The notes under the pieces were generated by a model, which did no database searches, had not been told where the DNA came from, and saw only the letters and a program-made list of their open reading frames with translations. Source: Bugula neritina (taxonomy: Eukaryota; Animalia; Bryozoa). From it: DNA of 18,571 bases. The first letter of the stretch is position 1. Each line of letters begins with the position of its first letter. Below, piece by piece: positions 1 to 18,571 of the stretch. The DNA is taken from the NCBI GenBank assembly GCA_964035545.1, contig CAXIUT010000206.1, positions 1 to 18,571 of the forward strand. Direction: 5' to 3'. Position numbers and translations under genes: made by a program.

Positions 1-98
1 CCCAACCCCAACCCCAACCCCAACCCCAACCCCAACCCCAACCCCAACCCCAACCCCAACCCCAACCCCAACCCCAACCCAACCCCAACCCCAACCCC
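1..98. repeat. Left telomere, (CCCCAA)n
   Basis: About 16 CCCCAA units from base 1 (one CCCAA variant near 78-82). This is the Tetrahymena-type ciliate telomeric repeat. Confidence 0.98.
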
Positions 99-145
99 TA
101 TTGAATATAATATAGGGTATATATATATATTTATTTTAAGAGGAG

Positions 146-1227
146 ATGATTCATTCATCTTACATCCTTTTCAAGGAATTCTTACCTCAATAAAAATAAC
201 TAATCCATTTGAAGTAAAAAAAAATATTCACCTCTCAATTCCACAATCAAAACTCTAAAAAAAAGTTAATACTCATCATAAGTTTAATCGTTCTAAAAGT
301 GAATTTGAATCTCATAATAATGCTAGCTCTCATCTTTTTTTGTCAACAAATACAGGGATCAATACGACCAAAAACAAAGCATTTAACTAACTCAGTTTCT
401 TAAAATTAAATGATGAAAAATTCTGTTTTGTAGTTAAATGTTAAAAAATAGAACAAAAAACAATAGTTTCTTTGGTTAAATCTTAAGAACAATCGAAAAA
501 ACAAATTAGTATACTCTCAAAACGCACAATTCATAATTTTAGTAATAAGAGTAATTGTACTCTTTTCTCGATCAAAAATAGACATATAGCTATGAAAAAG
601 CAATCAACTTCTCAAACTTAAATCAAATTTAAAATAAAACCTAAAAAAAATAAAATCAAGACTTTAAATATAAAAAATTAAATTAAAACAACTTTTAAGA
701 AAAAAACAAAACAAACTATAACTAATTTAAAACTTTTACTTAATCCTAAAGAATAAAAATAAATAAAAAGAAAAAAAGTTAAAGAAGTAATAAACTCTCT
801 CAAATATTTTTAAAGAAGAAATAAAAGTCAAGAAAGTTTATAAAAATTTGATAAAGTTTAAATTAACAAAATGAAAAATTAAAATGAGAATAAGATAATA
901 GGTCTAAAATACTCCTGAGTTAAGATTTAAAAAGGCTATTATTCAGAAAAAGAAGAAGAGTACTAATAAAAAACTATGATCAAGATTATATAAAAAAATA
1001 TAAGAAAGTTAAAATAAGAATAAAATAATTTTAAAGCAATTGAAAAGAGAAATAAATTGTAAATAAATTCAAAAACTTAGAGAATGAGAAATATCAACTC
1101 TACCTTTAGCATGTATATTGAGTAAAAAGATAATTAAGAATAGCATTAGAAAGCCAGAATTAAAACAGAGTTTTTAAAAGCTGATAAAGAATGGTTTTTA
1201 ATGAATAGACCAATTGATCCATGGTGA
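146..1227 (+). CDS. Hypothetical K/N/E-rich protein (TAR=Glu)
   Basis: Long open frame ending ...MNRPIDPW-TGA(1225-1227). The ATG at 146 joins this frame only with one extra base, probably in the A run at 216-224. One in-frame TGA at 916-918 (see findings). No recognisable domain. Confidence 0.55.
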
Positions 1228-1295
1228 TTAAATATTTTATTTAATATTTTAAATATCTAATTATTATATATATCTTTTGGGAACAAATAATGAAT

Positions 1296-2231
1296 TCAAT
1301 AAATTTAGGTTGAACACTCCTTCTATTTATCATAACGAGTTATGCTTCTTCGATTTTTTCCCTTGTTTTTTAACATTCGTTTTAATTCAGTGATACTTGG
1401 TCTTTTTAACTCATCTCTTTGCAACATTCGAACTAAAATAGCTTCAATATCTTATCCATAAAGATCTGCAACTTCTTGGCAAGCTTAACTGACTTTATCG
1501 TAATCAATTCCTTCAGTAGAGTTTCTCATATATCATAGAAAGGTCTGCTAAGAGAAGTAATTCCATAAAAACCAAGTCCTAGAGTAAAATACTACTGATG
1601 ATTATCTATTAACGATCTATTTAACTCTTAAATTTTATCCATTTAAAGCTAATCTATGAGCTTCAGGAGAATAATACCCAAAATCCATATCATCATCAAT
1701 GTCTTATTGATAGTTTTTTGAAAGCTGGTTCTAGAGATTTCAATTACAGAATAGGAGAACATAAAAACTGACTGTTACTGATAGCAAATCGATATGGTTT
1801 ATTTGTTTTCAGGATTAATTTTTTTGTCTAAGTAGAAGAACTATCTATATCTGTTGAACAAAGATGCTTAGAGCTTCTTATCTTTTAAAGGCTCGACCTT
1901 ATTGCATTCTTTACATGATTTCTTGTTCGAGATTATGAGGAGCAAAATCAAAGATAAGATAATAAAGTCTTATATCAGAGCACATAGATAAGTCGCATTA
2001 ATAATAGTTTTAAGGTTTAAGTAATAATGGTTAGTGGTTATTTGGTTATAATAATTCTTTTAGTGTTGAACTGGCTTTGAGATATGTTTTTTCAATAAGT
2101 GCATAAGGTCTTTTCGAAGCTTTGTGATGCACGACAGTTATTTAGCCATAAACAGGATCGCAGTACTTTCTAAGAGATTTATATTATTGTTCGATTTTAG
2201 TCAATATGCTTTTACTGTCTGTTATGCCCAT
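1296..2231 (-). CDS. Protein kinase-like (probable pseudokinase) with N-myristoylation-like start; several apparent frameshifts
   Basis: Starts MGITDS. Kinase-fold remnants: LIFDFAPHNLEQEI (hinge), GYYSPE (APE-like), VF.TLGL.VFMELL (helix F), RML..D..KRPS (subdomain XI). No clear HRD or DFG. Several single-base shifts between about 1500 and 1870. Confidence 0.6.
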
Positions 2232-2396
2232 CTTAAATGTTATATGGAACTATTAATATTTTTAAAGAAAAAATATTAGTCTAGCTTTAAGGAGCGTTTA
2301 AATAAAAATCAATTTATTTGTCGTCATTGACAAGTTTAGATATACTGAATCATTATTTAAGAGTGATATATTAATTTATATTTAAATATTTATTGA

Positions 2397-2997
2397 TCAT
2401 TCAGGTTTATATTCAGGTGGTTGGAAGAAGGAAACTGCTGGTTTAGCTGGCTAAAATCCTATATTACTAATATTTTACCAAATATTTTTTTGAGATTACT
2501 TCTCCAGATGAAAGCTACAAGAATATATGGCAAAAGATAGGCTGCTTCATAATAATTTTATCCTGCAATATTTCGATGAGTAATTCCTCTGATCAAAGAA
2601 AAAGGTTCGAATGGTAGAATGGCCATAACTTGTCCGCTAAAGAAAGTTCCAATCATATTGATTACAACAATCATAAGTAAACCTACAATAATAGTACTTT
2701 TGAATGAAGAAAAAGTCATTTATTGACTGAGTGCTTTTAGTTGTCCTTCGACAGCCGCAATCTTTTTTTAATGTCCTTTGTTTTGAGCTTGAATAACATG
2801 AGTGCTCTTGAGTTTATCAAGTTTTTTATTGAGTTTTTCAACTTCAACTTGCTTAAAAGATATTTACTTTTGTTAAGTTTGTAGTCTTCTTTTCGATAGA
2901 GAAGGAAGTAGCTGATCAGCTCGCTGAGAGTAGATGCACAAATAGCTGCTGCAACTATCATTAGAAACTTTAAAGGTTCAAACACAAACTGACTCAT
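2397..2997 (-). CDS. TMCO1: TMCO1/EMC3-family (DUF106) ER membrane protein, 2 introns
   Basis: Removing 20-nt introns 2848-2867 and 2459-2478 gives 187 codons: ELISYFLLYRKEDYK..K.EVEKLNKKLDK, FSGQVMAILPFEPFSLIRGITHRNIAGE, KKIFGFEP. These match TMCO1 motifs (LPF.P...HRN). Confidence 0.85.
2459..2478 (-). other. 20-nt spliceosomal intron (TMCO1)
   Basis: GTAAAATATTAGTAATATAG; removal restores the frame. Confidence 0.85.
2848..2867 (-). other. 20-nt spliceosomal intron (TMCO1)
   Basis: GTAAATATCTTTTAAGCAAG; removal restores the frame (LNK-IEVEK). Confidence 0.8.
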
Positions 2998-3077
2998 ATG
3001 TTGATTTGTTTTTATTATAATCAACTCAGAATTTAGAGATCATTTATAAATATATATTAATTTATCAACTTGAACTC

Positions 3078-3509
3078 ATGAATACTCGATCAAGTAATCA
3101 ACAGAGAATTCCAATGTAACCTTAACTTGAAGAATGCGAGGCTGAAGGCATAAGAGATCGAAAAATATATTTTGGAAAGTACTATTATCTGATTAAATGG
3201 AAAGGACATCCAGAAAGTTCAAACAGTTGGGAACCCAGAGAGCATCTCTAGTAAATAATTCAATCTATTTTGAGTTATAATTACTTAGAAGAGAAGTAAT
3301 TCAAAATTCAATTATATGAATTTCAAATTGCAAAAATTACCAAGAAGATAAAATAGTTGGAAGAGAAAAAGAGAAATTCTACCAGAAATAAAGAAAAATA
3401 TCAAGAAAAAATCGATAAACAAATCTAAAAGAGGAATAACATATAAAGCTAATTTTTTCAGATAGTTCAAATAAAACAATCAAAGACAAAAAAATATATC
3501 ATTTATTGA
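3078..3509 (+). CDS. Chromodomain protein, 143 aa
   Basis: Uninterrupted frame to TGA, containing EAEGIRDRKIYFGKYYYLIKWKGHPESSNSWEPREHL (chromodomain signature) followed by a coiled-coil tail. Confidence 0.85.
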
Positions 3510-3572
3510 CCGTAAAAAGTGATTTAGTTGATAGTTTATGAGTTTTGAATAATCAATATCTTGAAATAAATA

Positions 3573-4199
3573 TCATTTAGTCCTACTTTAAATTGTAGGA
3601 ACTTTTCGTCTACTTTGTTTTACATGTCGAACAGTCAACGATATTCTTTAAAAATCAGCTTATTTGTACTTTTATCCTTGAACAGTTCTTGAAATACCAT
3701 GTTTCCATTTGAAACGAACTTATTCTGATAATACATAACAACTTCTATCATTTATTTCTAGAAGATATTAAAGATTTTTGTCTTAAACATTGATTAATCG
3801 AAGATATTCAGTTGATCCCAGAGAAATTCCTACAATTATATCTCCAAAAGAATCAGTATCTTAGACATGCATTCCGAGGCGGTCTTTTTGACAATATTTA
3901 TTGACTAGTATTTGATTAGGAGGATCTTTTTATTAAAAGATTTTTTGTTTAATTGTTTAATTGACGATAAAGTTAAATTATTGAAGAGGGTAGTGTGAAT
4001 TAGATTAAATAGGCTGAAGATATTAATTTTCAATTTTAGTTTGAAAATATTTGATACCATAGTATTGTTGTTATCTTCTTAATTCTTTACACCATGCATG
4101 ACTATTAATTATTGCGAAGGACTTTTGTTTTTGTTCAATTGAAATAAAGTTTTCAAAATATTTTAATCCTGGAATCAAAGAAGGTTGTTTAAGGATCAT
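3573..4199 (-). CDS. AlkB-family 2OG-Fe(II) dioxygenase, 208 aa
   Basis: Intronless, clean frame: IPGLKYFENFIS, LRREQQYYG, PNQILVNKY, GMHVEDTDSFGDIIVGISLGS, SCYVLSEEVRFKWKHGI, RISLTVR. This gives the NxY, Hx(D/E), H and RxSxTxR motifs. Absent from the supplied ORF track. Confidence 0.9.
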
Positions 4200-4262
4200 A
4201 TTTAATGTGATAAGATTCTGAACTAAATTATGAATAAGCTAATAATAGATTATATTTACTCC

Positions 4263-4916
4263 ATGTACTTAGGAAATTCTTCAATAAAAAGAGTAGATAA
4301 ACAAAAAGTTGAGCAGAGTTAACTATTAAATGAGATAGAGGAACAGTTGAATCTAACTTGTTTTATATGCTCCCATATTTTTAATACTACTAATCGTATC
4401 CCTAAAATGATTTGTAAAAGACAACATACATATTGTGCTGAATGCATTAACCTTATACTGAGATCTCGACCACTGAAATGTCCTTAGTGTAGATTTAGAA
4501 TATCAGAAGTTAATATATCAATAAACAAAACAATTCTCTCCTTTTTGGAACATTTTCCTGCCCTTCAGAAAGAAATAGATATTAAAATAGAAGCTACCCA
4601 ACAGCTTAAACAATAAAATTATGATCTTATGGCCTAAATTCTTAAATTGAAACTACAATTGACTAGAATAAATCGTTAAAATCCTTAAAAAAATGAAATA
4701 TAAGATGAAATAAAACCTTAATAAAGTGCATAAATTCCCAAGTCAGTTAAAACTAATAAAAAAGAAGTAAGTTTATCACAAAAAACTAATTAATATTCTC
4801 TTTCAAAGGGAACTCCAATAACTAAAAGCGATAGAAAATCAATAAATAATGAATTTAATCAAATGTTCAGTCCAATTATTCGTGGCTTCAAAAGACCGAC
4901 AAACTTACTTTTATGA
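4263..4916 (+). CDS. C3HC4 RING-finger protein (probable E3 ligase)
   Basis: CFIC...PKMICKRQHTYCAECI...KCPECR followed by coiled coil; clean frame to TGA. An alternative in-frame ATG lies at 4230. Confidence 0.85.
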
Positions 4917-4984
4917 TTATTGCTTCACTTTAGTTATTTAATATTTATAGTAATGTTTAAATTATTTTTAAAGATATATTTGAA

Positions 4985-5624
4985 TCAATAGATATTTTTG
5001 ACCATCACTGCATAGAAGTCATCGAAACTTATGTGTCCATCTTTATTGCTATCAGCCTTCTCAACCATCATAAGAAGAGTTTCGGAGTCTACGTTTTCTT
5101 TAAGATGCGAGTTCATATCCTTTAAGTCTTCCAATGTTAGATAGTTTTTGTTATGTCTGTCATATTTCTTGAAAATTGAGGCAATCATCTTTTTACTTTA
5201 ATTCTTGTAAGGACGAGTATCCATAGCCTTCATAAACTAGATAAAACTGATTCCTCCTGTTTCTTCACTATCAAATTAAGCCACAATCTAATAAGTTGTT
5301 TTACGATTTGGTTCAAAGTTGTTTTGAGTCAGTAAAAGCTTAATATCATTTGGAAGCAAAACTCCCATACCAGTTGAGTCATATGAATCAAAAACTTCCT
5401 TTAAATCTATCACATCTTGATAGTTCAGACTGCCAGTCACATAAAGAGAAGGTTCAAACTATCTCAAATCTTTTCTTTAAACCTGACTCCATACATATCA
5501 CTTCTATCTATCTTTGATTCACTTTTATCAGGACTATAGCCGAACTTTGAGAAGAGTTGCGCATCTCACTACTTCTACCAGTTCTGAAGGAACTAGTTTG
5601 ATTTTTAGGTACTCTCATAGACAT
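4985..5624 (-). CDS. Centrin-like EF-hand protein with N-terminal extension
   Basis: DLKEVFDSYDSTGMG, FDSEETGGISFIEF, IFKKYDRHNKNYLTLEDL, ADSNKDGHISFDDFYAVMVKNIY: four EF-hand-like units with a centrin-type C-terminus. The 5' part needs either a 19-nt intron (5483-5501) or two single-base corrections. Confidence 0.8.
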
Positions 5625-5832
5625 TTTTTTTCCTTAGATATCTTAAAGTAATAAAAATTAACAATAAATCAGTTATTCTTTGATAAATCAAAAAAAACTT
5701 ATTATTTATCATTTGAACTGCATAATAATCTTTCTTAGAATGATATTTTTGATAAATTAATTTTAATCAGTAAAGAAATAGCACTTGTTTATCAGCTACG
5801 TATTTAAATAATAATTAATATTACTTTAGAAA

Positions 5833-6420
5833 ATGACTAAATCATTGTTGCTGGTAGCAATCTTAGCCCTATACTCAGTTGAAGCACTCTACTTTGGAAT
5901 TACAGCTAAGCCTTTCTGCTTCGATATTGAAGAATAGCCTGGAAAAACCATTAAATTCTTTTACGAAGTCACAGGGGAAAAACCAGAAGAAACTCAAGTT
6001 CATATTGTTAGTGACAATAAAGTAGTTCAACTAAGTCTTACAGGTTAGAATAATAGAACCTAAATTAGTGGTGACAGTTCTCTTAATGTTTGTTTTGTTT
6101 CAACTGATGGTGGATATAAATCAGTTTCTGTAGATTTCTTTACTCATGATAAGGCTCATCTCTTAGAATTAGCAAAGAAAAGTTAAATTTATTAACTCCA
6201 TACTAAGCTAATTGATGTCGGAGAAGGACTCAAAGAAATTACCAAGAACGAACTTTTCGAAGAACAAAGACAGATAATTCAAGCTGAGATTATCACAAAC
6301 CATGAAAATAAGGTCAAAAATTTCGCTATCATTAAACTACTAGCTATTATAGTAGTTGCTGGAGGACAACTATACCTACTCAAGAAAATGCTTGACAAGC
6401 AAGGTTATCAACCAGTTTGA
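5833..6420 (+). CDS. p24/emp24/gp25L (GOLD domain) cargo receptor, 195 aa
   Basis: Signal peptide, two Cys (FCF...VCF), coiled coil, C-terminal TM ending GGQLYLLKKML, and a terminal V. Clean frame. Confidence 0.8.
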
Positions 6421-6494
6421 TGATTCATTATCGTATAATTGTGATAAAATAAAATCATACTCATATAGAAATTATTAGAATCAAATAATATCAT

Positions 6495-9400
6495 TCAAAG
6501 CTTTTCTCCAGAAAGAATTAATAAATTCATTGCTTCTTTTTGAGCTTGATATAGTTTGGCATTCAACTATTAGTTTTCTTCTTGAAGTGATTAGCAAGTG
6601 AATTCTTTCTCTAAGATGAGTTTCGAAAGGAGATCTCTTTCTTCAGTTATTCTCTTAACCATTTCTGCTATATCAAGAGCTTCTCTGACTGCTTGTTAAA
6701 GCTTTTGATTGTTGAGTCGTAAATCTTGCTCTGTATCTTCAAATCTATTAACTTCATCTTATAGATTAACAATTTTAGCATTTCCTTGATCTTCTAAGTT
6801 TTCAAGTTCAGCTTATTTTAGTTCTCGGACTCTATCTTTCCAGGTGATCATAGTATACATCTTAATTTTTCTCAAGTTTTTTAGAAGTAAATGAGCACAA
6901 AGTTTTTCTTTTCGATCTTCGTGATAAGAAAGAATTTTATGAACTTTCATTTCATCTTGAATTTTCTCTTCTAGACTCATTTTTTTACTATATTCCATTT
7001 CCATTTTATCTTTTTGCCTATTTAATATTTTGATTAATCCTTTACGTTCCATTGTATCGAAAAGTTTATTAAAATCTGAGGAGGCTTTATGCCATATTCT
7101 AAATGCATAGAAAACATCTGGTTTTCTAAGATTATTTCTTACAAATTTGGCATATTTTCTATATTTTTATCTAACAAGCATATATGTTTTGAGATTATTC
7201 CAAGCTTTTGCTGGAGCTGAGTAACCATTCATTGAAAGAATTAATCTAGAAATAAATCGATATCGAAGATTATTATCTTTCTTTACTTGTTGATCTTTTT
7301 TCTCTTGGAAACGAGGAGAAACAACAAATTTACCGCCATCATCTTCTAACAAAAGACCCTTTTACTTTTTAAAATCTTCAAGGAATACTTTGAGCCGATT
7401 AATTTCAATTTTCTCTTTTTGACCTAACCTTCTTCTTCATGCATTTGTTTGACTCTTTTGGCTTATGTTTCCAGTTTCCATGAGAAAAATAGATCTTTTA
7501 CTCTCCAATTCATTGCATTTCTTGTAATTTTTCTCATTAAATTTTTAGCAATTCTCATTTAATATTAATTTCTTCTCCATTTTCTTATATTAAAGCTCAA
7601 AATAGCCTTTCTTTTCTTTTCAAAAGTTTAAATTACATGTTGGATTCTGTTAGTTAAATCACTTTTTTTCAATACATCTTTATTATTGGCATAATTTTTA
7701 GCTCTTGTGAAGAAGCCTTCTAAAGTATTATGGATCATAAATGGACAGAACTTGTTAATAAACAATCTGTTAATAGATTTTCTTCTATATTTATTTTGAG
7801 AGGTATATTAAATAAAAGATCTCATTCTTAACTCTTGCCATTTTTTAACAAATTTATTAAATCTAGCTTTAAATTAAATTTTCTTGTTTACTTTTTTCTT
7901 AATCAATGATATTAATTATGATGAATAGCCTCTAAAAAGCCAAGTACTTAATTTATTCTTTTTTATGTTATTGAAAATCTTTTTTTGAGTATATTGTCTC
8001 CAGACATTCCATAATCCTCTGATAGTAGGATCATATTGTCGATAGGTAACTTGACCATCATGTAAATTGATTGCATAATTATATTTTTTCTAAAGTCCTT
8101 CAAATCTTTTCATTTGTCTTTTTCTTCATCTGTCCATAATATTACTCGTTTATCTAGAAGTGTATATCTCCAAGTTCTGAAAGCAAAACCGGCATTAAAC
8201 CTGAATTTTTTTGTGTAAATACGATCCAAATTATCTCTTAATTTCTTATGAAAAATTTATTCTTTCATCTACTTGACAAAATATACAAAAGTTTCTTTGA
8301 GAACTCTATTGCTGAGTTGTTTATCGATATTACTCCATTTTTAGATAAAATTATCTGTAGTTTTTCTCCAATCTCTAAAACAAAATTTGAGCATTTTCTT
8401 TCCCCAAGCTTTTGCATAACTTTTAAGTTTTAGTTTAGTCATGAATTATGTTTTCTTTTCAAATATTTAACCGTCTTTTTTGAAGAATTAATTTTCAGAC
8501 TTCATTCTAACACTTTATTTTTCACTTTGTTCGACAAATATTTCCTGATTTTTTGCCATATTTTAATATTCAGTTTGAAATCTTTTATGTTTATCTTGGA
8601 GATCTGCTAAGTTAAAATCTTCTTCTTTTTTATTGAAACTTGATACAAACTTATTCTTGAGCATTATCCTTGACTTTCTTTATAATATTTATGCAAAATT
8701 TAGAACATTATGCTCTCTTTTTACCCTTGCTCTCCATCTTTGAATATAAGATCCAAATTTCGATTTTATATTTTTTACGAAAATAGATACAATCCTAATA
8801 TTTTTCTTTCCTCTAAAGTTTATTCTTTATCTTTAAGTCTATTTTTAAGAATTTATATTTTACCTTATTCTTCAGTTGAAACTGCATCAATTTTATTTAT
8901 TTATTCTTTGAGCTCATCAATATCTGCCTGAATCAAACCTCTTTCGTATAGATGTTCTTAATTTCTGATTTTTCCAAATCCTACATAGAAATCAAGTTAA
9001 AGATTTCTTTCAAAGACACCTCCAAGAGTTCTTTTAAGTCTTTTGTTTTTATCTTTATTTAATTGAAATGCATTGAAGCCTTTTCTAGCTAGTCTATCTT
9101 GAATGATTTTTTCTTTACTTAAGACAAAATATTAAACTCTATTTTATTCATTGGTTATTTTATTATCTTATTTAAGAATCCACATAAATACCTGTTTAAC
9201 TTTAGTTTAAGTCATCTAGTTGATTCTATGACAAACTTTTCTGAATCTCCAAAATTTATATCCACTTCTCATAAATTTATATAAAAATTTTAACTTTATT
9301 TCTTTTTCATTTCTACAAATTTTCTTCAAGAGGTTCATAAACTTAGTTTTCTCCAGTTAATGTGTTTTAGTATCTAAAACTTCTTTGATATGCTTGTTCT

Positions 9401-11237
9401 AGTCAAGAAGATAATTATAACTGAATTAACAACTCTGAATCTTGTCGTTAATCGATTTCTTCAGCATCGCGAATCTCTTCTTAAGAATTTTTGCAAAACC
9501 AAAATTTTATCAAATGATTTTTTACTCTAAATCATATTCATTATAGTCAAAATAACTTTGCTTTGTTGCTTTCTAAGACGCCAAATATCAAAAGCTTTCT
9601 GCATTTTAGTCTTTAAGTATCTTGAAATTTTCATTAAGGCCAGATCTTGATAGAGAATCTTTTTTTATGAATGCATCTCCTTAACATCATCTTCTAATTG
9701 CTACTTTTTTTCATTTATATTGATTTTTTCTTCTTTAAGTCCATCAATTTTAGAAAGGGTACTAAATAAAATAAAATATACGTTTATTTTTTGATAGAAG
9801 TTAAAGTTTTCGATTTTGAATCGATTTAATTAATTTTTAGATTTGTTCCTATAAGTAATTATCCAAGTATTCTTCTCTTTTTTAAGGCTAAAAGTTTTTT
9901 TAGTTCTTTGAAATACTTAATAAATAAATAAGTACCCGTCTTTTTATATTTTTATTTTCTAATCCACGTGATTTAGATAGTTTAGCCCAAGCTGTGAAAA
10001 AGAGACTCATTACTAAAAATTGACTCTGTTATTTTGAACTAGTCTAAATCTATTGATTAATATCATATTTTCTTGTAGCTATCCTAAGAGAACTGAAGAA
10101 ATGAACTTTAGTTCGATTCATAAAGGTGTTCCAAACATGATTAATGGTCAAGATAGACTTTTGATGGAAAGGATTTGATTTATAGTACTTAAGCATATTG
10201 AAACTAGAATATAGATTGCTTTTGAAAAAAGATTAACTAATTTTTTGGAAGACATTTTGAACTTCAAACCTTCTAGTTGTAGTAAATTAAGCATTTTTAG
10301 CTTCAGTTCTCCATTGCCTCCATACCTGAGCTTTTATTCTTCTTTTCTGAGTTGCTGATATGATTCTACTAGCCGTTTCTTGTTCTTCTAGAGGTTTAAA
10401 ACTGCTTCTAAGTAAGCCGAGAATTCTATTTTTAACAGAAAGAATATATTTTTTGCGAATAAGAGATAGTTGAAATACTTTTTTCTGGGCCCATTTTCTA
10501 AGCATACTATATCTCTGCATTTTAGAAAAGTTTTTTCTCAGCTTATTACCATATATTATTGACATTAATGAACCTATTAACTTTGCAGTTTATCCTTTTT
10601 TAAATTAATTAAACTCTGTTGCTGATTTTTAATATACCTTATTTTTTATTAAATTTAAAGAGATATTTCTTTTTATTTAGGTTAGTGAACTTTTCTTTTA
10701 CTGACTAGTATTTAATTTTCTGCTCTTAGACGTTAGTTTTAATTTTCTATATTTTGAAGTACAATCTTGGTGCCTTAATTTTGTGCTTTAAGACTTAATA
10801 TTTCCATTTAAATTCCTTTCCTATCATTTTGTATTTGTGCTATTTTTTGTTCTTCAAAAATGGTAGCTTATCTTGCTTCTTTGATTTTTCTTAACAAAAT
10901 TTATTCAGAAGATTTAAGTACATTTAGTTTATCAATAAGTAGTTTCTTTTAATTCTCGATTTCCATATCTTCTTTGTAGATAGTTGATGATATCTTTGAC
11001 TTGATATTATTGATCTCAGTTTCTGTGAGTGCGATATTGTCAGTGGTGACTTGCAGTTATAATTGTAGTTCTTTAATTTTTGTGTTTGTTTATGCATTTC
11101 TGTATAAGTTAAATGATACTTCATGCGGAGGACATCGTTTTAATTTGGATGAGGTAAACTGTATCAGTTGAAGGATTTTCTTTATTCTTTTGAGACCCTC
11201 TTCTAGTTTATTACCTGCTATTTGATGACCGGTGCAT
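6495..11237 (-). CDS. ~1,560-aa helical protein with Sfi1-like (F/L)xxW(K/R) repeats and terminal coiled coils
   Basis: Reads as one frame after removing 20-nt introns 9916-9935 and 9762-9781 and correcting several homopolymer deletions (about 7350-7980 only spot-checked). Repeats include MLRKWA, VWRQWR, KAFDIWR, YKFWR, YIQRWR, LKFCFRDWR, AFRTWR, LWNVWR, AFRIWH. Ends ...LQEENEELNAKL...GEKL-TGA. Confidence 0.7.
9762..9781 (-). other. 20-nt spliceosomal intron (Sfi1-like gene)
   Basis: GTATATTTTATTTTATTTAG; removal restores the frame. Confidence 0.85.
9916..9935 (-). other. 20-nt spliceosomal intron (Sfi1-like gene)
   Basis: GTACTTATTTATTTATTAAG; removal restores the frame. Confidence 0.85.
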
Positions 11238-11603
11238 TTTTGAATTATTTAAACTTAAATATAATCATAACGACTACAATCTTTTTGATTTCTGAAACTT
11301 CATAAATCATCCTTTATTGTATATTGTTATCATATTAATATTATCTTCAATTTGATTTAGCATAAATAAATATAGTTTATAGATGATCAGTCTTTCTAAA
11401 TTATTTGTAAGCTATTTAAATTTAAATATATCCTGTTTTTGAGTTAAGTATGATTGGAGGCTAAATATTCTGATGAATTGAGGAATTTTACCACTAGATT
11501 ATTGATTAAGGTGATAGTTCAAGTTGAATTGCCTTATGTTTGTTTCGTATAAATTGACTTTTTTTCAAGGCTTGCCTATAATTAGAAATTCTTCCATTAA
11601 GTC
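11238..11603. promoter_or_regulatory. Divergent intergenic region, probable bidirectional promoter
   Basis: Longest non-coding gap in the window (366 bp), AT-rich, between two head-to-head ATGs. No specific motif identified. Confidence 0.35.
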
Positions 11604-13107
11604 ATGGAGTTTTTTGATGACGTCAATAACCAAAGAATAGGCGAAGAAGCTTAAGTAATAGGTTCTAACTGCTCGATAGAAGGTTCTCCCCAAGCTTTGT
11701 CTAACAAGAACATCTATGGGCATACACCTGGATCTATTTCCGGTAGGGACTTACAAGATAAATCAATGAAATATATTGCTGATCGCTTCTTGCCTATCCG
11801 AAAGACACCCTGCTCAGCTAAAGAGCTATTCAATGACCAATTAGAATGGATGGAAGACTAGGAGAATGAAGATGAGAAAGCCAAACGCAGTGAACGCAGA
11901 GGAATGACAGTCAAAGATGTGTATAAAATGGGTGTACTTGGTGAAGGGAATATATTTAAAGATCACGACATTGAAACTTTTTCCAATGAAAATTTGCTAA
12001 GATTCAAGTACATCTTCCTTTATTCAGTCATAAAGATTAAAATAAAAGCGAGAATGATTACAAAAACCTTTTCTCGAAGGGATTCTTACAGCTTCCTGAA
12101 GATTGTGTCCCTGCATACAAACAAAAAGATCGCAAGATTAGCAAAGTTCCCACCAAAGTTCTAGATGCTCCTGCTCTCTATGATGACTTTTATTTGAACC
12201 TTATCGACTGGTCTGCCTCAAATATGCTGGCAGTTGGATTAAGTAACAGTGTTTATTTATGGAATGCTGGTAATTCTAAAGTTGTGAGATTGGTTGAGCT
12301 AGCTTCAAATGATCTGGTTACTAGTTGTTCATCCAGTCCTTCATCAAATATTTTGGCTGTTGGAACACATATGGAGAAGTACAGCTTTGGGACTGTATTC
12401 GTCATAGAAAAATAATGACTTGCAAAGGTCATACTGCTAGAGTAGGTGCTATTGCTTGGAATTCAAATAATCTTTTTGCAAGTGGTTCAAGAGATAAAAC
12501 CATTCTCACAAGAGATATTCGTACTAAAGACGAATTCGCAAATAAAATGATAGGTCATAAACAAGAAGTCTGTGGATTGAAATGGTCTTTTGATCAGCAG
12601 CAATTGGCTTCAGGAGGTAACGATAATAGACTTAATATCTGGAGTCCTCATTCTAGTGTACCAACTTTTAGTTTATTGAGACACACTGCAGCTGTGAAGG
12701 CGCTAGCTTGGTCTCCTCATCAACACGGCTTGCTTGTATCAGGAGGAGGCACAGCTGATAGAACCATTCGATTTTGGAACTCAATGTCAGGAGAGGAAAC
12801 TAAATGTCTCAATGTTGGTTCACAAGTTTGCAATCTAATGTTTGCAAAGAATGTTAACTAACTTGTGAGCACTCATGGATATTCTCTGAATGAAATAAAT
12901 GTCTGGAAGATGCCACAAATGCAAAAAATTGAAACTCTCACAGGACACACATATAGAGTACTTTATTTGGCCATGAATCCTGACGGAACTACAATAGTCA
13001 CTGGAGCTGGAGATGAAACACTTCGCTTTTGGAATATTTTCCCTAAAAAGGAAAAATAAACAAAAGATAAATCCAATCTCAATACAGAATCAATCTGCCT
13101 TCGTTGA
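11604..13107 (+). CDS. FZR1: Cdc20/Fizzy-related (Cdh1/CCS52-like) APC/C activator, WD40
   Basis: C-box DRFLPIR, KVLDAPALYDDFYLNLIDW, GHKQEVCGLKW, AAVKALAWSPHQHGLLVSGGGTADR, NVNELVSTHGYS, TGAGDETLRFWN, and an IR-type tail (CLR-TGA). One 20-nt intron at 12008-12027 and one missing base at about 12372. Confidence 0.95.
12008..12027 (+). other. 20-nt spliceosomal intron (FZR)
   Basis: GTACATCTTCCTTTATTCAG; removal joins the C-box frame to the WD40 frame. Confidence 0.85.
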
Positions 13108-13182
13108 TCTTTTAATTGATGCATATGCTTTTTTAATTAGAATCAATCAAATAGTATAATTCAATTAAATCATATTTTCAAT

Positions 13183-13269
13183 GGGGTTGGGGTTGGGGTT
13201 GGGGTTGGGGTTGGGGTTGGGGTTGGGGTTGGGGTTGGGGTTGGGGTTGGGGTTGGGGTTGGGGTTGGG
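13183..13269. repeat. Internal (GGGGTT)n tract, the right telomere of the first chromosome
   Basis: About 14 perfect repeats, 75 bp after the FZR stop, in right-end orientation. Length is similar to the terminal tracts. Confidence 0.95.
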
Positions 13270-14907
13270 ATCTGGACATTCTTCAGTCAGTAAGAGAAAT
13301 AAATCAAAGGAAATTCAGAATTCTGAAATAAAACAAAGAATTAAAGAGATTCTTTACACAGTGAAGGATTAGAGGCAGCATATAGAAAATATTTTACACT
13401 AAAATGATCTTGAAATCATCAATCTACAACAAAGTTATTCATAAATGGTACAAAAATTTTTATTCAGAAATATGAACATGATTTTGATGATCTTTAACCG
13501 AAAGAAATACTGATTCTTCAGGAATTATCTGAAGGGCTTAAAGAGATGAATATTGACCCGACACAAATTTTAGGCCATTCAGCGTCAATCAAGGAAGAAC
13601 CTTTTAAAGGAAGAAATCTCTCAAAATAGGAAATAATTAAAATCCAATAAGCAGTTCTTGATAAACTTGGGGCTCAATTAGAATAATGATAGAAATATAA
13701 TGATGGAAGAAGCTTTTTCATGCAGTCTTAATGTATGTAAATTCATAGTTGATCATACAATAGTTGGGAAGGCAGCAGCCAACCTTCCCCCGAATAAAAA
13801 ATAACTAACTCTATATAGCTCCAAACTTCCTCAATCCATCTCCAATCTTCTTGTTAAATCTTCAAAAATTTCCCATGATGTTCCTTCCATACCAATATCA
13901 GAAGATACTTAGTCAGATTATCTTGTTATAAAAAATCATTTGTGTCTTCAATGAAGTCTTCTTCAGTTATGACCGAAAAATCATTTAAGAAAAAAGAATA
14001 AAATTACTCAAATAAAAGTTCTTAGGTCAGATAACTTGATTAATTAAAGCAAACTCAAGAAGCAAAATGTTTAAAATTAATTCCTTTAGTAACAAAGTAA
14101 GAAGAAGAAGATAGTACAGATGAAAATAATGAAGAAGATATTGAGTCACAAATGAGGGATATAAAAATTCATCAAGAAGAGATAAGAACAAAATATATGG
14201 AAAATTTTAAGAAAAAAAGAGAAAAGAATAAAATTAAGACCAAAAATGAGGGAAAAAATAATCAAAAAATTCCATCTTATAATTATGATGGTTCCCTTAT
14301 TACTCCCCTTAAAAATGAATTTGTTCAATATCCTCCTCATTATCTTAATCTTTAAATTCAACTTCAATAGAAAGAATAGTTCAATTCAAACTCTAAGAAT
14401 TAGAATAAAAAAAGTAAACCTAAAAATTTAGTTCCTATTTAAGTATTACCTGATAAAAAATAAGAATTTTAGATTTATTAAAGCTAATTTATCAAAGAAG
14501 TAGAGAATGTGAAGTGGGTTGAAGGAGTTAAAAGTTCTTCTAAAAAATAATAAGCAAAATAAAGTCCAGGACATCATAATATAAATAACTTTAGAAAAAG
14601 AAAGATAAATTTATTCAAAGAAAATAATGAACCTCGTAGAATAAAATTCGGAGATCTCTAAAACTATAAAAACATATTGATGGACAATATGACAACTGAG
14701 ATGTCTAACATGAATATGCCAACAATAAAAAGTTCTGTTTTTAGTATAATTTCTTAGAAAGAAGAGCTTCAAGAACGTAAAATTAAGATAGCTAATAACA
14801 AGGCTTTACAATTTTTATTGAATGAATCACATTCAGAAAAATCTGGATTAAAAACAGGTTAAATTAATAAAAAGAGTTCTTTTTTTGGAAGTTTTTTTCC
14901 CAAGTGA
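13270..14907 (+). CDS. 5'-truncated hypothetical low-complexity/acidic protein
   Basis: Coding-like sequence begins immediately after the telomere tract with no ATG. Includes KEEEEDSTDENNEEDIE and ends ...FFGSFFPK-TGA. A few single-base shifts between 13430 and 13950. Confidence 0.6.
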
Positions 14908-14985
14908 TTTTTAACTGTAATAATATATATATTATGCTTGTTTTAATAATTCTTATCATCATCATAATATAACTAATTGATCAAA

Positions 14986-15478
14986 ATGAGTTCTAAGTTA
15001 AGTGAGGAGCAAATGGAAGAGTTCAGACAGGCTTTTAAATTGATAGATGTTGATGGTGATGGTAAAATTAGTGCAGTTGTATCAATTTTATAAGTTAGGA
15101 ATTGCAGGGAATAATGAAGAACTTTAACTATTCGATTACGTAAGAAGAGGTTAAGGTGATAATTAAAAAAATAGATACAGATGGCAATGGCACAATTGAA
15201 CAACATTAATTTCTTAACTTCATTGCAAGGTAATCAAATTATAATTAAGTCAATCTCATGAACTTAAAGACTAAGCAACTGATCTTAAACAAGTGTTCAC
15301 TATGTTTGACAAAGATGGAAATGGACTTATAACAAAAGAAGAACTAAGGCAGGGTCTTAAATAAATGGGATAAACTTTAAGCAATAGTGAACTATAAGAC
15401 TTGTTTTCTGAGGCCGATCTTGATGGAGATGGTCATATAAGTTTCCAAGAGTTTGTTTAACTAATGGGTGGCAAATGA
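14986..15478 (+). CDS. Calmodulin-like protein (4 EF-hands), 150 aa, 2 introns
   Basis: Removing 20-nt introns 15079-15098 and 15230-15249 gives loops DVDGDGKISAVE, DTDGNGTIEQHE, DKDGNGLITKEE, DLDGDGHISFQE. Too divergent to be canonical calmodulin. Confidence 0.92.
15079..15098 (+). other. 20-nt spliceosomal intron (calmodulin-like)
   Basis: GTATCAATTTTATAAGTTAG; removal completes EF-hand 1. Confidence 0.92.
15230..15249 (+). other. 20-nt spliceosomal intron (calmodulin-like)
   Basis: GTAATCAAATTATAATTAAG; removal restores the frame. Confidence 0.9.
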
Positions 15479-15591
15479 TCGGATAAATATTAATCAAAAC
15501 TTAATTATTAATCTAAACTTATAAAAATCCAATCTTTTATGAGCTATTTTAATAGAAAATCCAAAGCTTTACTTTAATTATATTCGAAATA

Positions 15592-17562
15592 ATGCTTTAT
15601 ATACCCACTTATACTGAAGGAGATATTCAAAAGTATCAAAATCCACAAAGAAGATATCCCTGGATTCAGTCTAAAGAGTAATTGGGAGTTTATTAGAACT
15701 GTTAGACCAAACAACAAGTTCAATCTCACATAATAACTCTTCCTCAAAATAGATTAAAACTTTAAAAATCACTTATTGAAGGACGAATACATAATAAACA
15801 TCCCTTTATATGTTCTATTTATGACTATCACATTCTAAATAGAATTGTCAAGAATAATGAACATTAAAAATAGGAATAATTATCTATAGAAATCTATTGT
15901 GACCGTTTATTTTTTTTCGCTGAAAGAGATTGGACTTTTCAAAACATTTTAAATGCTCTTATAGGACTCAAAAGACTTATTTTAATTTATGGTCCTTTTG
16001 CTGTGACAGAAACTTCCTTTCGAAAAAACCAGGAATAATAAATAAAAATATGGATAAGTAACTAGCCTAGTAATAATCAGCCTGATCGATCTCTTGCTAA
16101 TGAACAAGAAACTCTGAATAGTTTTTTGACTATTATTTCTAATAAAAATGTAGAAGTAAAGAGAATTTTATCTAAGAGTCGATCATTAAGATAAGCTATT
16201 TCTATTTTACAAGATTTAGGTAATTATCCACAAAGCAGATACAAAAATAGTCCCTCAATAAATAAAAACATTGCTTAGGTTTTTCAGCACTAGGAAAGCC
16301 ATGAAAATCCTTTTTTAACATTTCAACATCAAACATTCAAGAAAGTAGTCAATAAGAAAATAGATAAACCTTTATCACATCATCCAACTTTATTTCATGA
16401 TTTATCAAATTATGGTTTCTTTAAAAAAAATAAGTTTTAAAAAGGTAATAAAAATCGTTCTATTTCTAACTTTACTGGCTGCAATAGTTCATCTCATTAC
16501 TTATTGAATACCTTATATGATGCTAATAGATTTTCAGCATACAGTGGTTTAGTTTCTTAGTAAATAAGTCCTAGAAAAACCTAACAAATTCACAAAAAGT
16601 TTATTAATAGTTCTAAGATGAAACCCGTTTATTCTACCCAAAAAAATAGTAGAATCAGTAGTAATTGGAATTCGAACATTAATGGCAAAAATATGAATAA
16701 GAATTCATGCAACGCTACATTTAATGATAACAATAGAAATACTAGTTATAGCAGTATTTCAAAGAATAATTATGAAATAGGAAATATTTAAAAAAAGAGT
16801 CTTCAAAGACGAAAAATACCTTCTTTTATTACAAATATTGTTCAAAAAAATAATATTAAACAAGAAATAAATAATAACAGTCAAAAGTCTTCTCCTAAAT
16901 TTATTATTTCTTCAAAGAATAACAAAATATGGTTTAGTCCAAGTCATAGTTCTAAATAAAGATATCATCTAAATAAAGCTGATAAATAAAGATTTTAATC
17001 TAACTAAAATAGCAATAAGAGATCTAGAAAATAAATTAAATTTTTTACATTTTGTCAGACAGAAGAAGGTCAAAAAAATAGAAAATCCAATTATAGTAAC
17101 AGTTCAAAACCTAAGTTAATAAACTTCCAAGATTCTTTTATTGAAAATAAAACAAATAAAAGTCTATCGAATTATATTTCTTCAAAAAAACAATATCAAT
17201 CAGGAGAATTAATATAGCCATTCAAAGGTCCTGTAGCAATCAAATAGTAGCAAGAGAATCCATTTGTTATTAACATAAGTGATATTCATCAAAGATAGTC
17301 CTTAGTTCAAAAAGGAACAGACAAAGCTTCTCGATTACTAAAAGAATAGATGACGAAAGATTTCGATAATATTATGGGCGAAGTAGATGAAGAAAGTACT
17401 GCAACTTAAGAGGCGACTCATAAAAAAGAACAATATGAATCAATAAAAATCGAATAAGATGATAATCTGAAATAAAGTTTATTAAAAGATAGAATAAAGA
17501 AGAAACAACTTGCTTTTGCTTAACTTAAAAAAGAAGCTTTGAAAGTTTTAACTGATTTATGA
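15592..17562 (+). CDS. Hypothetical protein, 656 aa (globular N-terminus, long N/S/K-rich region, C-terminal coiled coil)
   Basis: 1,971-nt frame with no TGA until 17560-17562. The N-terminus (HPFICSIYDY...IYCD...KIWIS) may be a highly degenerate kinase-like fold; this is weak. Confidence 0.75.
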
Positions 17563-17623
17563 TTTACTATTTTGAGTTAATTATATTAATGTAGTCACCA
17601 TCAAGGGTTATACAGATTTTTTG

Positions 17624-18438
17624 TCACTTTTTTGGTGCTTTTTTTGCATCTTTTCCTGCTGGTGCTGCTTTTTACATTCTTTAGAAAAATGTGTCAGGAT
17701 CATTCCATTTTGGATTTGCCTACTTTAAGATAGTTTGTTCCCAGTCATCTACATCATTTACTACTCTTTGTTCTTCTTGTTTTTATTCCATTTTAACTTT
17801 CTCGGTCCACATAGGTTTAGTAAAGATTGATTTTAGTTTATTCGGGTCAAGAGTAGTACTTTATCCAGTTCTAACTCTAAAACCGGTGCAACCTGGAATA
17901 AGTCCTCCAGCATTATAGAAGTTAGACTAATATTAAGGATATTTATAGCTTTTATCGCCCAAAGAAGCAACAGTAAGATTATTTCGTTGACCATCTAATC
18001 CAAGTACTTTCATTTTGGTTTGCATTCTTGACTAAACTTCATAGTGATTTCCTTTACTCTGATTAGCACCTGAATAAACTCTAATTCCTTAATTACTATT
18101 AAAATACCTTTATTTTGTATTTCAGCATTTGTTTCTCTTCCTCCTGATATATGTCCCTTTTCCATTCTTTTTCTTTCAACTTGTTAAGGCAAAGGAATAT
18201 GTTTTATGCCTCTTAAGTCAATATCTTTGGTTTGCGAGTAATATTTTTATTCGTAGACTTTGAGGCAAGGTTTGAATTGATATTAGTTTGATAGTTTTTA
18301 TTGATAAGTTTTTATTCTGTTTTGCTGTGGGATGGATGAAGGTTGTAAGAGGTTATTTAGTTATCCTTCAGGCTTAAGATGCACTTTTCCTCCTGAAAAG
18401 CGTTGTGAATGAGCTCCTTTCCACTCTGGTTGTTGCAT
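17624..18438 (-). CDS. SASRP1/SPATS1-like protein, 264 aa, 1 intron
   Basis: Removing the 20-nt intron 18088-18107 gives a clean frame. RNNLTVASLGDKSYKYPEYESNFYNAGG and WTEKVK.EEKQEEQRVVNDVDDW resemble the SASRP1 domain as recalled (GD..Y..PE....F...G; V..LD.W). Confidence 0.65.
18088..18107 (-). other. 20-nt spliceosomal intron (SASRP1-like)
   Basis: GTATTTTAATAGTAATTAAG; removal restores the frame. Confidence 0.85.
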
Positions 18439-18496
18439 AAATACTATATATATTATTACAATAAAAATCAAAATTTTGTGGCATGGAAAATAAATC

Positions 18497-18571
18497 GGGG
18501 TTGGGGTTGGGGTTGGGGTTGGGGTTGGGGTTGGGGTTGGGGTTGGGGTTGGGGTTGGGGTTGGGGTTGGG
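18497..18571. repeat. Right telomere, (GGGGTT)n
   Basis: About 12.5 perfect repeats running to the end of the window. Confidence 0.98.

Follow-up and report, generated by a model that had tools for sequence, protein, structure and literature searches.

What do TAA and TAG mean in a stretch of DNA where they recur within the frames of recognizable genes, and to whom does that DNA belong? The question is raised by contig CAXIUT010000206.1 of GCA_964035545.1, an assembly filed under the bryozoan Bugula neritina, which we analysed from end to end (positions 1 to 18,571 of the forward strand; this whole stretch of 18,571 nucleotides is termed the window below). An earlier note, made from the letters of the window, had proposed that both codons specify glutamate and that TGA is the only stop. 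We arrive at the same answer: with a probability of about 0.9, we are dealing with an entire macronuclear chromosome of a ciliate assembled together with its host, in which UAA and UAG are read as glutamate and UGA is the sole stop, as in NCBI table 30. This code is already described and is not new; what has to be established is that it is the one in use here, as against the several other ways in which ciliates, or faulty assemblies, could account for such sequences.

The window is the entire contig, C215 in our numbering, of an assembly of 216 Mb in 321 contigs, and its G+C content is 27%. Because telomere repeats cap both of its ends (Table 1), we can understand it as a complete macronuclear chromosome of 18.6 kb with telomeres of the Tetrahymena type, and many of the small contigs of the assembly are capped at both ends by the same repeat. 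The bulk of the ordinary tRNA genes, together with an rDNA array of 12-13 kb, is held by nine multi-megabase contigs, which we take to be the chromosomes of the host. The sequence of the window is also present in public DNA runs carrying three organism labels and stemming from three studies, where 0.92, 0.74 and 0.33 of the sampled words were recovered. Since runs of three labels contain it, the ciliate is a co-sequenced companion of the host rather than what the assembly was aimed at; the same organism, or close relatives or strains of it, is found under all three labels and in metagenomes from fresh water. This DNA comes from a ciliate whose sequences were assembled along with a host genome of much greater size.

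The switch-II motif of Ras and Rab proteins, DTAGQE, places a conserved glutamine beside a conserved glutamate. A genome-wide scan for the DNA pattern that encodes DTAGQ followed by TAR (TAA or TAG) gave 26 matches, of which 23 are on small contigs (C41 to C307; 18 TAA and 5 TAG), the other three being on multi-megabase contigs, at about the level expected by chance for such a pattern in some 200 Mb. The pattern in which it is the glutamine codon that is replaced, DTAG-TAR-E, had no match anywhere in the genome, and reversed control patterns had none either. With 23 cases on one side and none on the other, it follows that UAR stands in for glutamate codons, not for glutamine codons, in this genome. 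A second kind of position is provided by the EF-hand, where residue 12 of the loop is the bidentate glutamate ligand: TAG is found there three times, once in the centrin-like gene of the window and twice in loops encoded by a second contig, while TAA is found there once, in the calmodulin-like gene.

A second test made use of the Rab-GDI gene located on contig C11 and of its orthologues in two related ciliates, whose identity to the query piece is about 80%; L078 was recovered from a public run assembled by Logan, L079 from a metagenome of fresh water. All three genes contain in-frame UAR codons. They were set against 47 full-length references, and the log frequencies of each amino acid were summed over the columns represented by at least 20 references. 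For TAA (22 sites) the log-likelihood was -34.9 for glutamate, -54.3 for aspartate and -73.6 for glutamine, placing glutamate 19.4 log units ahead of aspartate and 38.7 ahead of glutamine, with lysine outside the five best fits. For TAG (5 sites) the values were -6.2, -9.5 and -13.9, respectively, glutamine being 7.7 log units behind, and two of the columns concerned are strongly glutamate (E28/32 and E35/46). The control codons were all assigned correctly, GAA and GAG to glutamate, CAA to glutamine, AAA and AAG to lysine, GAT to aspartate and AAT to asparagine. Scored separately, as the earlier note had suggested they should be, both codons therefore fit glutamate best, and neither in the DTAGQE scan nor in the GDI columns do they fall mainly on glutamine positions, or TAG on those of another residue. 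It had also been remarked that the case for TAG was the thinner one, and so it is (5 against 18 DTAGQE sites, 5 against 22 GDI sites); the evidence that TAG means glutamate is nonetheless adequate, and glutamine and lysine are rejected as meanings.

The familiar alternative is table 6, the code of Tetrahymena and Paramecium, where UAA and UAG are glutamine codons. It agrees with what we see in that UAR is sense and UGA the sole stop, and the telomere repeat (C4A2, as in Tetrahymena) and the class are common to ciliates that use it. A few UAR sites do fall on residues that are glutamine in distant homologues, such as a GDI column with E20/Q10, and one TAA of the calmodulin-like gene stands at what we take to be a glutamine position of calmodulin. 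Yet TAR is never seen at the glutamine codon of DTAGQE but occurs 23 times at the glutamate codon, the GDI columns place glutamine far behind for both codons, and the glutamine positions tested are never UAR: the conserved glutamines that were checked, among them the three named in the earlier note, are each encoded by CAA. Table 6 can be set aside with near certainty.

Aspartate deserves more attention, as it comes second in both likelihood tests. Some UAR codons are on aspartate-rich columns (D41/E3, for example), and a TAA of the AlkB-like open reading frame (ORF) stands where members of the AlkB family presumably have aspartate, the identity of that ORF being itself unconfirmed. That one or both codons mean aspartate, or are read ambiguously as aspartate or glutamate, is nevertheless very unlikely. 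The distance of 19.4 log units for TAA is large, DTAGQE and EF-hand position 12 are positions of glutamate, and in close relatives the codons that stand opposite UAR are GAA and GAG, not GAT and GAC.

Codon exchange between relatives gives the same picture. At the column of the TAA at 12859 in the FZR gene, glutamate is found in every one of the nine relatives that reach 72% identity, among 120 homologous fragments. In the orthologue alignments of GDI and FZR, TAA is opposite GAA or GAG 13 times, opposite CAA twice and opposite a lysine codon twice, and there are also columns in which TAA stands opposite TAG. These counts bear on a split code of the kind known in Oligohymenophorea sp. PL0344, where UAG is glutamate and UAA is lysine, read by a lysine-derived tRNA(UUA), with tRNA(CUA) genes for UAG (PMC10553269). 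The ciliate analysed here has in common with PL0344 the class, UAG as glutamate, tRNA(CUA) and UGA as sole stop, and here too it is tRNA(CUA) that was found while tRNA(UUA) was not. That UAA should be lysine, or some other residue, is still less probable than an aspartate meaning: TAA occupies the glutamate position of DTAGQE 18 times and is found at EF-hand position 12, lysine is a poor fit in GDI and rare in the codon pairs, and TAA and TAG replace each other between orthologues and between strains. In contrast to PL0344, UAA is glutamate here.

The strains were compared by aligning contigs from four public runs to positions 3500-9499 of the window. Most of the differences leave the encoded residue unchanged, being third-position substitutions in the predicted frames, and this indicates that purifying selection acts on these frames. 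One difference exchanges GAG for TAG (Table 1) and another, at 8607, TAG for TAA. It could be objected that the TAA and TAG codons within the frames go untranslated and reflect pseudogenes, assembly errors or missed introns, as there are indeed indel errors at homopolymers in the assembly, and introns of 20 nt do break frames. We give this practically no weight, because UAR codons occupy conserved positions of conserved domains in three related ciliates, the pattern is repeated on 23 contigs, and the strain differences bear the mark of selection. The DTAGQE scan, the GDI likelihoods, the FZR relatives, the orthologue pairs and the strain differences are all independent of the sites on which the earlier note had built its proposal, and taken together they uphold glutamate for TAA and TAG.

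As for termination, TGA follows the conserved C-terminus in all the gene ends examined, namely those of beta-tubulin, of GDI in the three ciliates and of eight genes of the window (FZR, centrin-like, calmodulin-like, p24, RING, chromo, the AlkB-like ORF and a PG-rich ORF). The FZR gene has an LR tail immediately ahead of its TGA (Table 1); proteins of the Cdh1/Cdc20 family close with an 'IR tail'. This differs from the codes of Condylostoma and of karyorelicts, in which genes can end in UAR as well and UGA can be a sense codon: no UAR was seen at the gene ends examined here, a small sample. The earlier claim that there were 14 genes, all ending in TGA, holds as regards TGA for the eight recognizable genes, while the count of 14 could not be confirmed, introns and homopolymer indels breaking the frames. 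The complete beta-tubulin gene of contig C10 (L042:1519-2841, minus strand) has 32 GAA, 5 GAG and no UAR, and a highly expressed gene such as this may avoid the reassigned codons.

Frame length by itself is of little help. The longest TGA-free frame among the loci examined reaches 2587 codons, and long TGA-free frames are not much commoner in this AT-rich window than long TAG-free ones. Because ORF length does not show here whether it is TGA or TAG that acts as the stop, the case for the code rests on conserved positions and not on ORF statistics. Introns of some 20 nt break up the frames; the three introns of the GDI gene on C11 (L044 + L045) are of that size and run from GT to AG. Other interruptions have a different origin. 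Contigs from two to four public runs carry one extra A or T at the homopolymers at 4211, 5475, 5545, 7408, 8118 and 8779, where the window has probably suffered single-base deletions, in which case the shift of frame from one ORF to its neighbour is in places, as near 8118, a fault of the assembly and not an intron. In the calmodulin-like gene, the gaps at the exon junctions are of 26 and 23 nt (at about 15070-15100 and 15230-15260), which is compatible with introns of some 20 nt.

How would the two codons be decoded? A tRNA(CUA) gene was found by ARAGORN at C10:16787-16858 (L057:1501-1572) and a second one, 75% identical to it, at C256:3981-4052; both fold as cloverleaves. The window itself, searched with Rfam and ARAGORN, yielded no RNA gene, and eleven loci from related ciliates contained no tRNA gene. 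Because the C10 copy is about equally close to the host tRNA-Gln and tRNA-Glu, the tRNA sequences do not tell which amino acid is carried. The C10 tRNA has a mixed look, with an anticodon arm like that of the host tRNA-Gln, and a 5' TCC start (acceptor end) and T arm like those of tRNA-Glu. Of the tRNA-Glu-derived genes with UUA and CUA anticodons that the earlier note suggested looking for, there are thus two candidates with CUA, whose similarity to host tRNAs does not tell a glutamate from a glutamine parentage, and the scans gave none with UUA. As a tRNA(CUA) cannot read UAA, a UUA decoder must exist, and it was either missed or lies outside this partial assembly. Scans of metagenomes for such a tRNA returned nothing or just GC-rich suppressor tRNAs of a bacterial type, and in the assembly the hits were tRNAs of the host, tRNA-Pro, an organellar tRNA-Glu and matches due to chance. 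By analogy with such codes elsewhere, we may imagine that tRNA(CUA) and its UUA-anticodon counterpart, not yet found, would be charged by glutamyl-tRNA synthetase, and that eRF1 would have been narrowed to UGA, losing recognition of UAA and UAG; for Carchesium, an altered GTS motif in the N-domain of eRF1 is reported (PMC10089648). Four near-identical stretches of the host (at C3:15297373, C6:3641411, C8:5561207 and C8:8507169) match the pattern of a UAA-reading anticodon loop and a T-loop, and may represent a tRNA-derived repeat.

Which ciliate is involved? The C4A2 telomeres, the introns of about 20 nt and the GDI tree point to the class Oligohymenophorea. In that tree, the ciliate and its two relatives L078 and L079 form a group (support 100) that joins Paramecium and Ichthyophthirius with an SH-aLRT of 97. 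Euplotes, Stentor, Blepharisma and Protocruzia branch elsewhere, as does a clade that we take, from one mis-binned record, to be that of rumen ciliates. Beta-tubulin was considered as a placement marker and discarded as too conserved; its exact sequence is not on record. In the papers searched we found no mention of assembly GCA_041192925.1, which contains a relative. UAR has been published as glutamate for Peritrichia only (PMC10553269, PMC10089648), and narrow distributions of intron length are reported for three peritrich genomes (PMC13685798). Vorticella campanula, Epistylis hentscheli and Campanella sinica are peritrichs with a genome available (PMC13685798). Because peritrichs belong to this class and are the only group with this published reading of UAR, they are the likeliest source, and the organism is quite probably one of them. 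The earlier note had left room for an independent lineage. A non-peritrich oligohymenophorean, representing a second origin of the code, seems unlikely to us, if less so than any of the alternatives considered above; in a weaker variant of this idea, the tRNA(CUA) would come from an old glutamine suppressor whose amino-acid identity had changed, a history that would agree with the mixed features of the C10 tRNA.

Several observations weigh against a table-30 ciliate chromosome and have to be put in the balance. The GDI gene of C11 contributes just three TAA sites and one TAG site of its own, most of the weight being carried by the two relatives, and for TAG aspartate, the second-best fit, is 3.3 log units behind glutamate on 5 sites. 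No public RNA run was found to contain the sequence of the window. Neither pattern scans nor a covariance model made from the pair of tRNA(CUA) sequences revealed a tRNA(UUA) on the ciliate contigs, and they yielded no tRNA-Glu and no tRNA-Gln from the ciliate nucleus; the C10 tRNA(CUA) is 72% identical to the host tRNA-Gln and 71% identical to the host tRNA-Glu. The placement was obtained with one gene and a quick tree that included no peritrich sequences. Finally, no 18S gene of the ciliate came to light, the universal 18S motif in the genome matching just GC-rich rDNA on C6 and C135 (about 59-63% GC), which we take to be that of the host, as it is not ciliate-like in GC.

Set beside what is known of the code, the finding has a modest scientific point and a practical one. 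The peritrich nuclear code was described from Vorticella/Opisthonecta, Campanella umbellaria and Carchesium polypinum, largely with evidence from transcripts. The present ciliate, from a lineage within or beside Oligohymenophorea, has the same assignments, UAA and UAG for glutamate and UGA as sole stop, whereas the evidence is genomic, with gene-dense chromosomes capped by telomeres and tRNA(CUA) genes. About 300 small contigs of the host assembly belong to this ciliate and need table 30 for their annotation; the standard code cuts them into pieces that make no sense, and table 6 would give wrong translations. The same contigs provide genome-level material for a ciliate in which UAR is glutamate, including its chromosomes with their telomeres, its introns of 20 nt and its genes for tRNA(CUA). 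If it were true that the organism is not a peritrich, there would have been a second origin of the code.

The features of the window are collected in Table 1, where Pfam matches were obtained with stop-free pieces of the ORFs. All six codons cited as glutamate positions in the earlier note, five TAA and one TAG (marked a), are present in the peptide contexts given for them, as are the TAG codons of CP-TAG-CR and ED-TAG-ENEDE. The first of these two must however be dropped as evidence for the code, since the central residue of that RING motif is variable and hence uninformative. Among the gene identities proposed, FZR, EF-hand and emp24/GOLD are supported by Pfam and RING weakly so, while AlkB and 'SASRP1' could not be confirmed. 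The AlkB label is our working assumption from a motif; the pieces of that ORF between stops are too short, and gave no match in Pfam or the PDB. The PG-rich ORF that had been called SASRP1 matches no family in Pfam.

Table 1. Features of the window (positions in nucleotides; a, codon cited as glutamate in the earlier note)
Feature	Position	Strand	Basis or remark
Telomere (CCCCAA)n	1..98		Direct reading; the same repeat opens many other small contigs
Chromodomain gene, in-frame TAA and TAG	2928..3509	+	Pfam PF00385, E 4.3e-10; stop TGA
AlkB-like ORF, 16 in-frame TAA	3573..4280	-	Translation; stop TGA
AlkB-like ORF, TAA (a)	3861-3863	-	After H-V, acidic position of H-x-D/E motif
RING-finger gene	4143..4916	+	Weak Pfam RING matches, E ~2e-4, below cut-offs; stop TGA
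RING-finger gene, TAG	4485-4487	+	In CP-x-CR
Centrin-like EF-hand gene	4985..5497	-	Pfam EF-hand_7, E 1.8e-13; stop TGA 4985-4987
Centrin-like gene, TAG (a)	5237-5239	-	EF-hand loop position 12
p24/emp24 GOLD-domain gene, in-frame TAA and TAG	5830..6420	+	Pfam PF01105, 28.1 bits, above cut-off; stop TGA
Strain difference, GAG in window, TAG in contigs of two public runs (C>A at 8915)	8913..8915	-	Strain alignment
ED-TAG-ENEDE, TAG	11859-11861		Direct reading
FZR/Cdh1-type gene, WD40 part	12325..13107	+	Pfam PF24807 (CDC20/Fizzy WD40), 205 bits, above cut-off
FZR, in-frame TAA (a)	12859-12861	+	Context NVN-x-LVSTHG
FZR end, LR-TGA	13105-13107	+	Direct reading
Internal (GGGGTT)n tract	13183..13269		Direct reading; ~75 nt past FZR stop, abuts unique sequence
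Calmodulin-like EF-hand gene, three exons	15001..15478	+	Translation; EF-hand loops by pattern; stop TGA
Calmodulin-like gene, TAA (a)	15207-15209	+	EF-hand loop position 12
Calmodulin-like gene, TAA (a)	15371-15373	+	
PG-rich ORF	17624..18121	-	Translation; stop TGA
PG-rich ORF, TAG	17927-17929	-	
PG-rich ORF, TAA (a)	17933-17935	-	
Telomere (GGGGTT)n	18497..18571		Direct reading

Gene order is not conserved with the relative at about 80% protein identity: in the parts of its contigs that were fetched there was no synteny beyond FZR, and the other genes of the window were not there. In that relative (L080-L088, from ENA and Logan assemblies), another gene of the CDC20/Fizzy type comes after the FZR orthologue, on the opposite strand.

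The telomere repeat within the window, past the FZR gene, has its counterparts elsewhere. Contigs C10, C11, C14 and C15 begin with C4A2, contain several internal tracts of G4T2 and end with G4T2; an internal telomere tract is present at about 6700-7050 of L051, and in C15 a run of N adjoins such a tract. These internal tracts could be alternative sites of telomere addition or joins made by the assembler. Contig C73 (70.6 kb; L010, L077) is of another nature, with 19% G+C, a tRNA-Phe and an organellar-looking tRNA-Glu(UUC), and is probably the mitochondrial genome of the ciliate; a tRNA-like stretch is duplicated in it, at 6135 and 17707.

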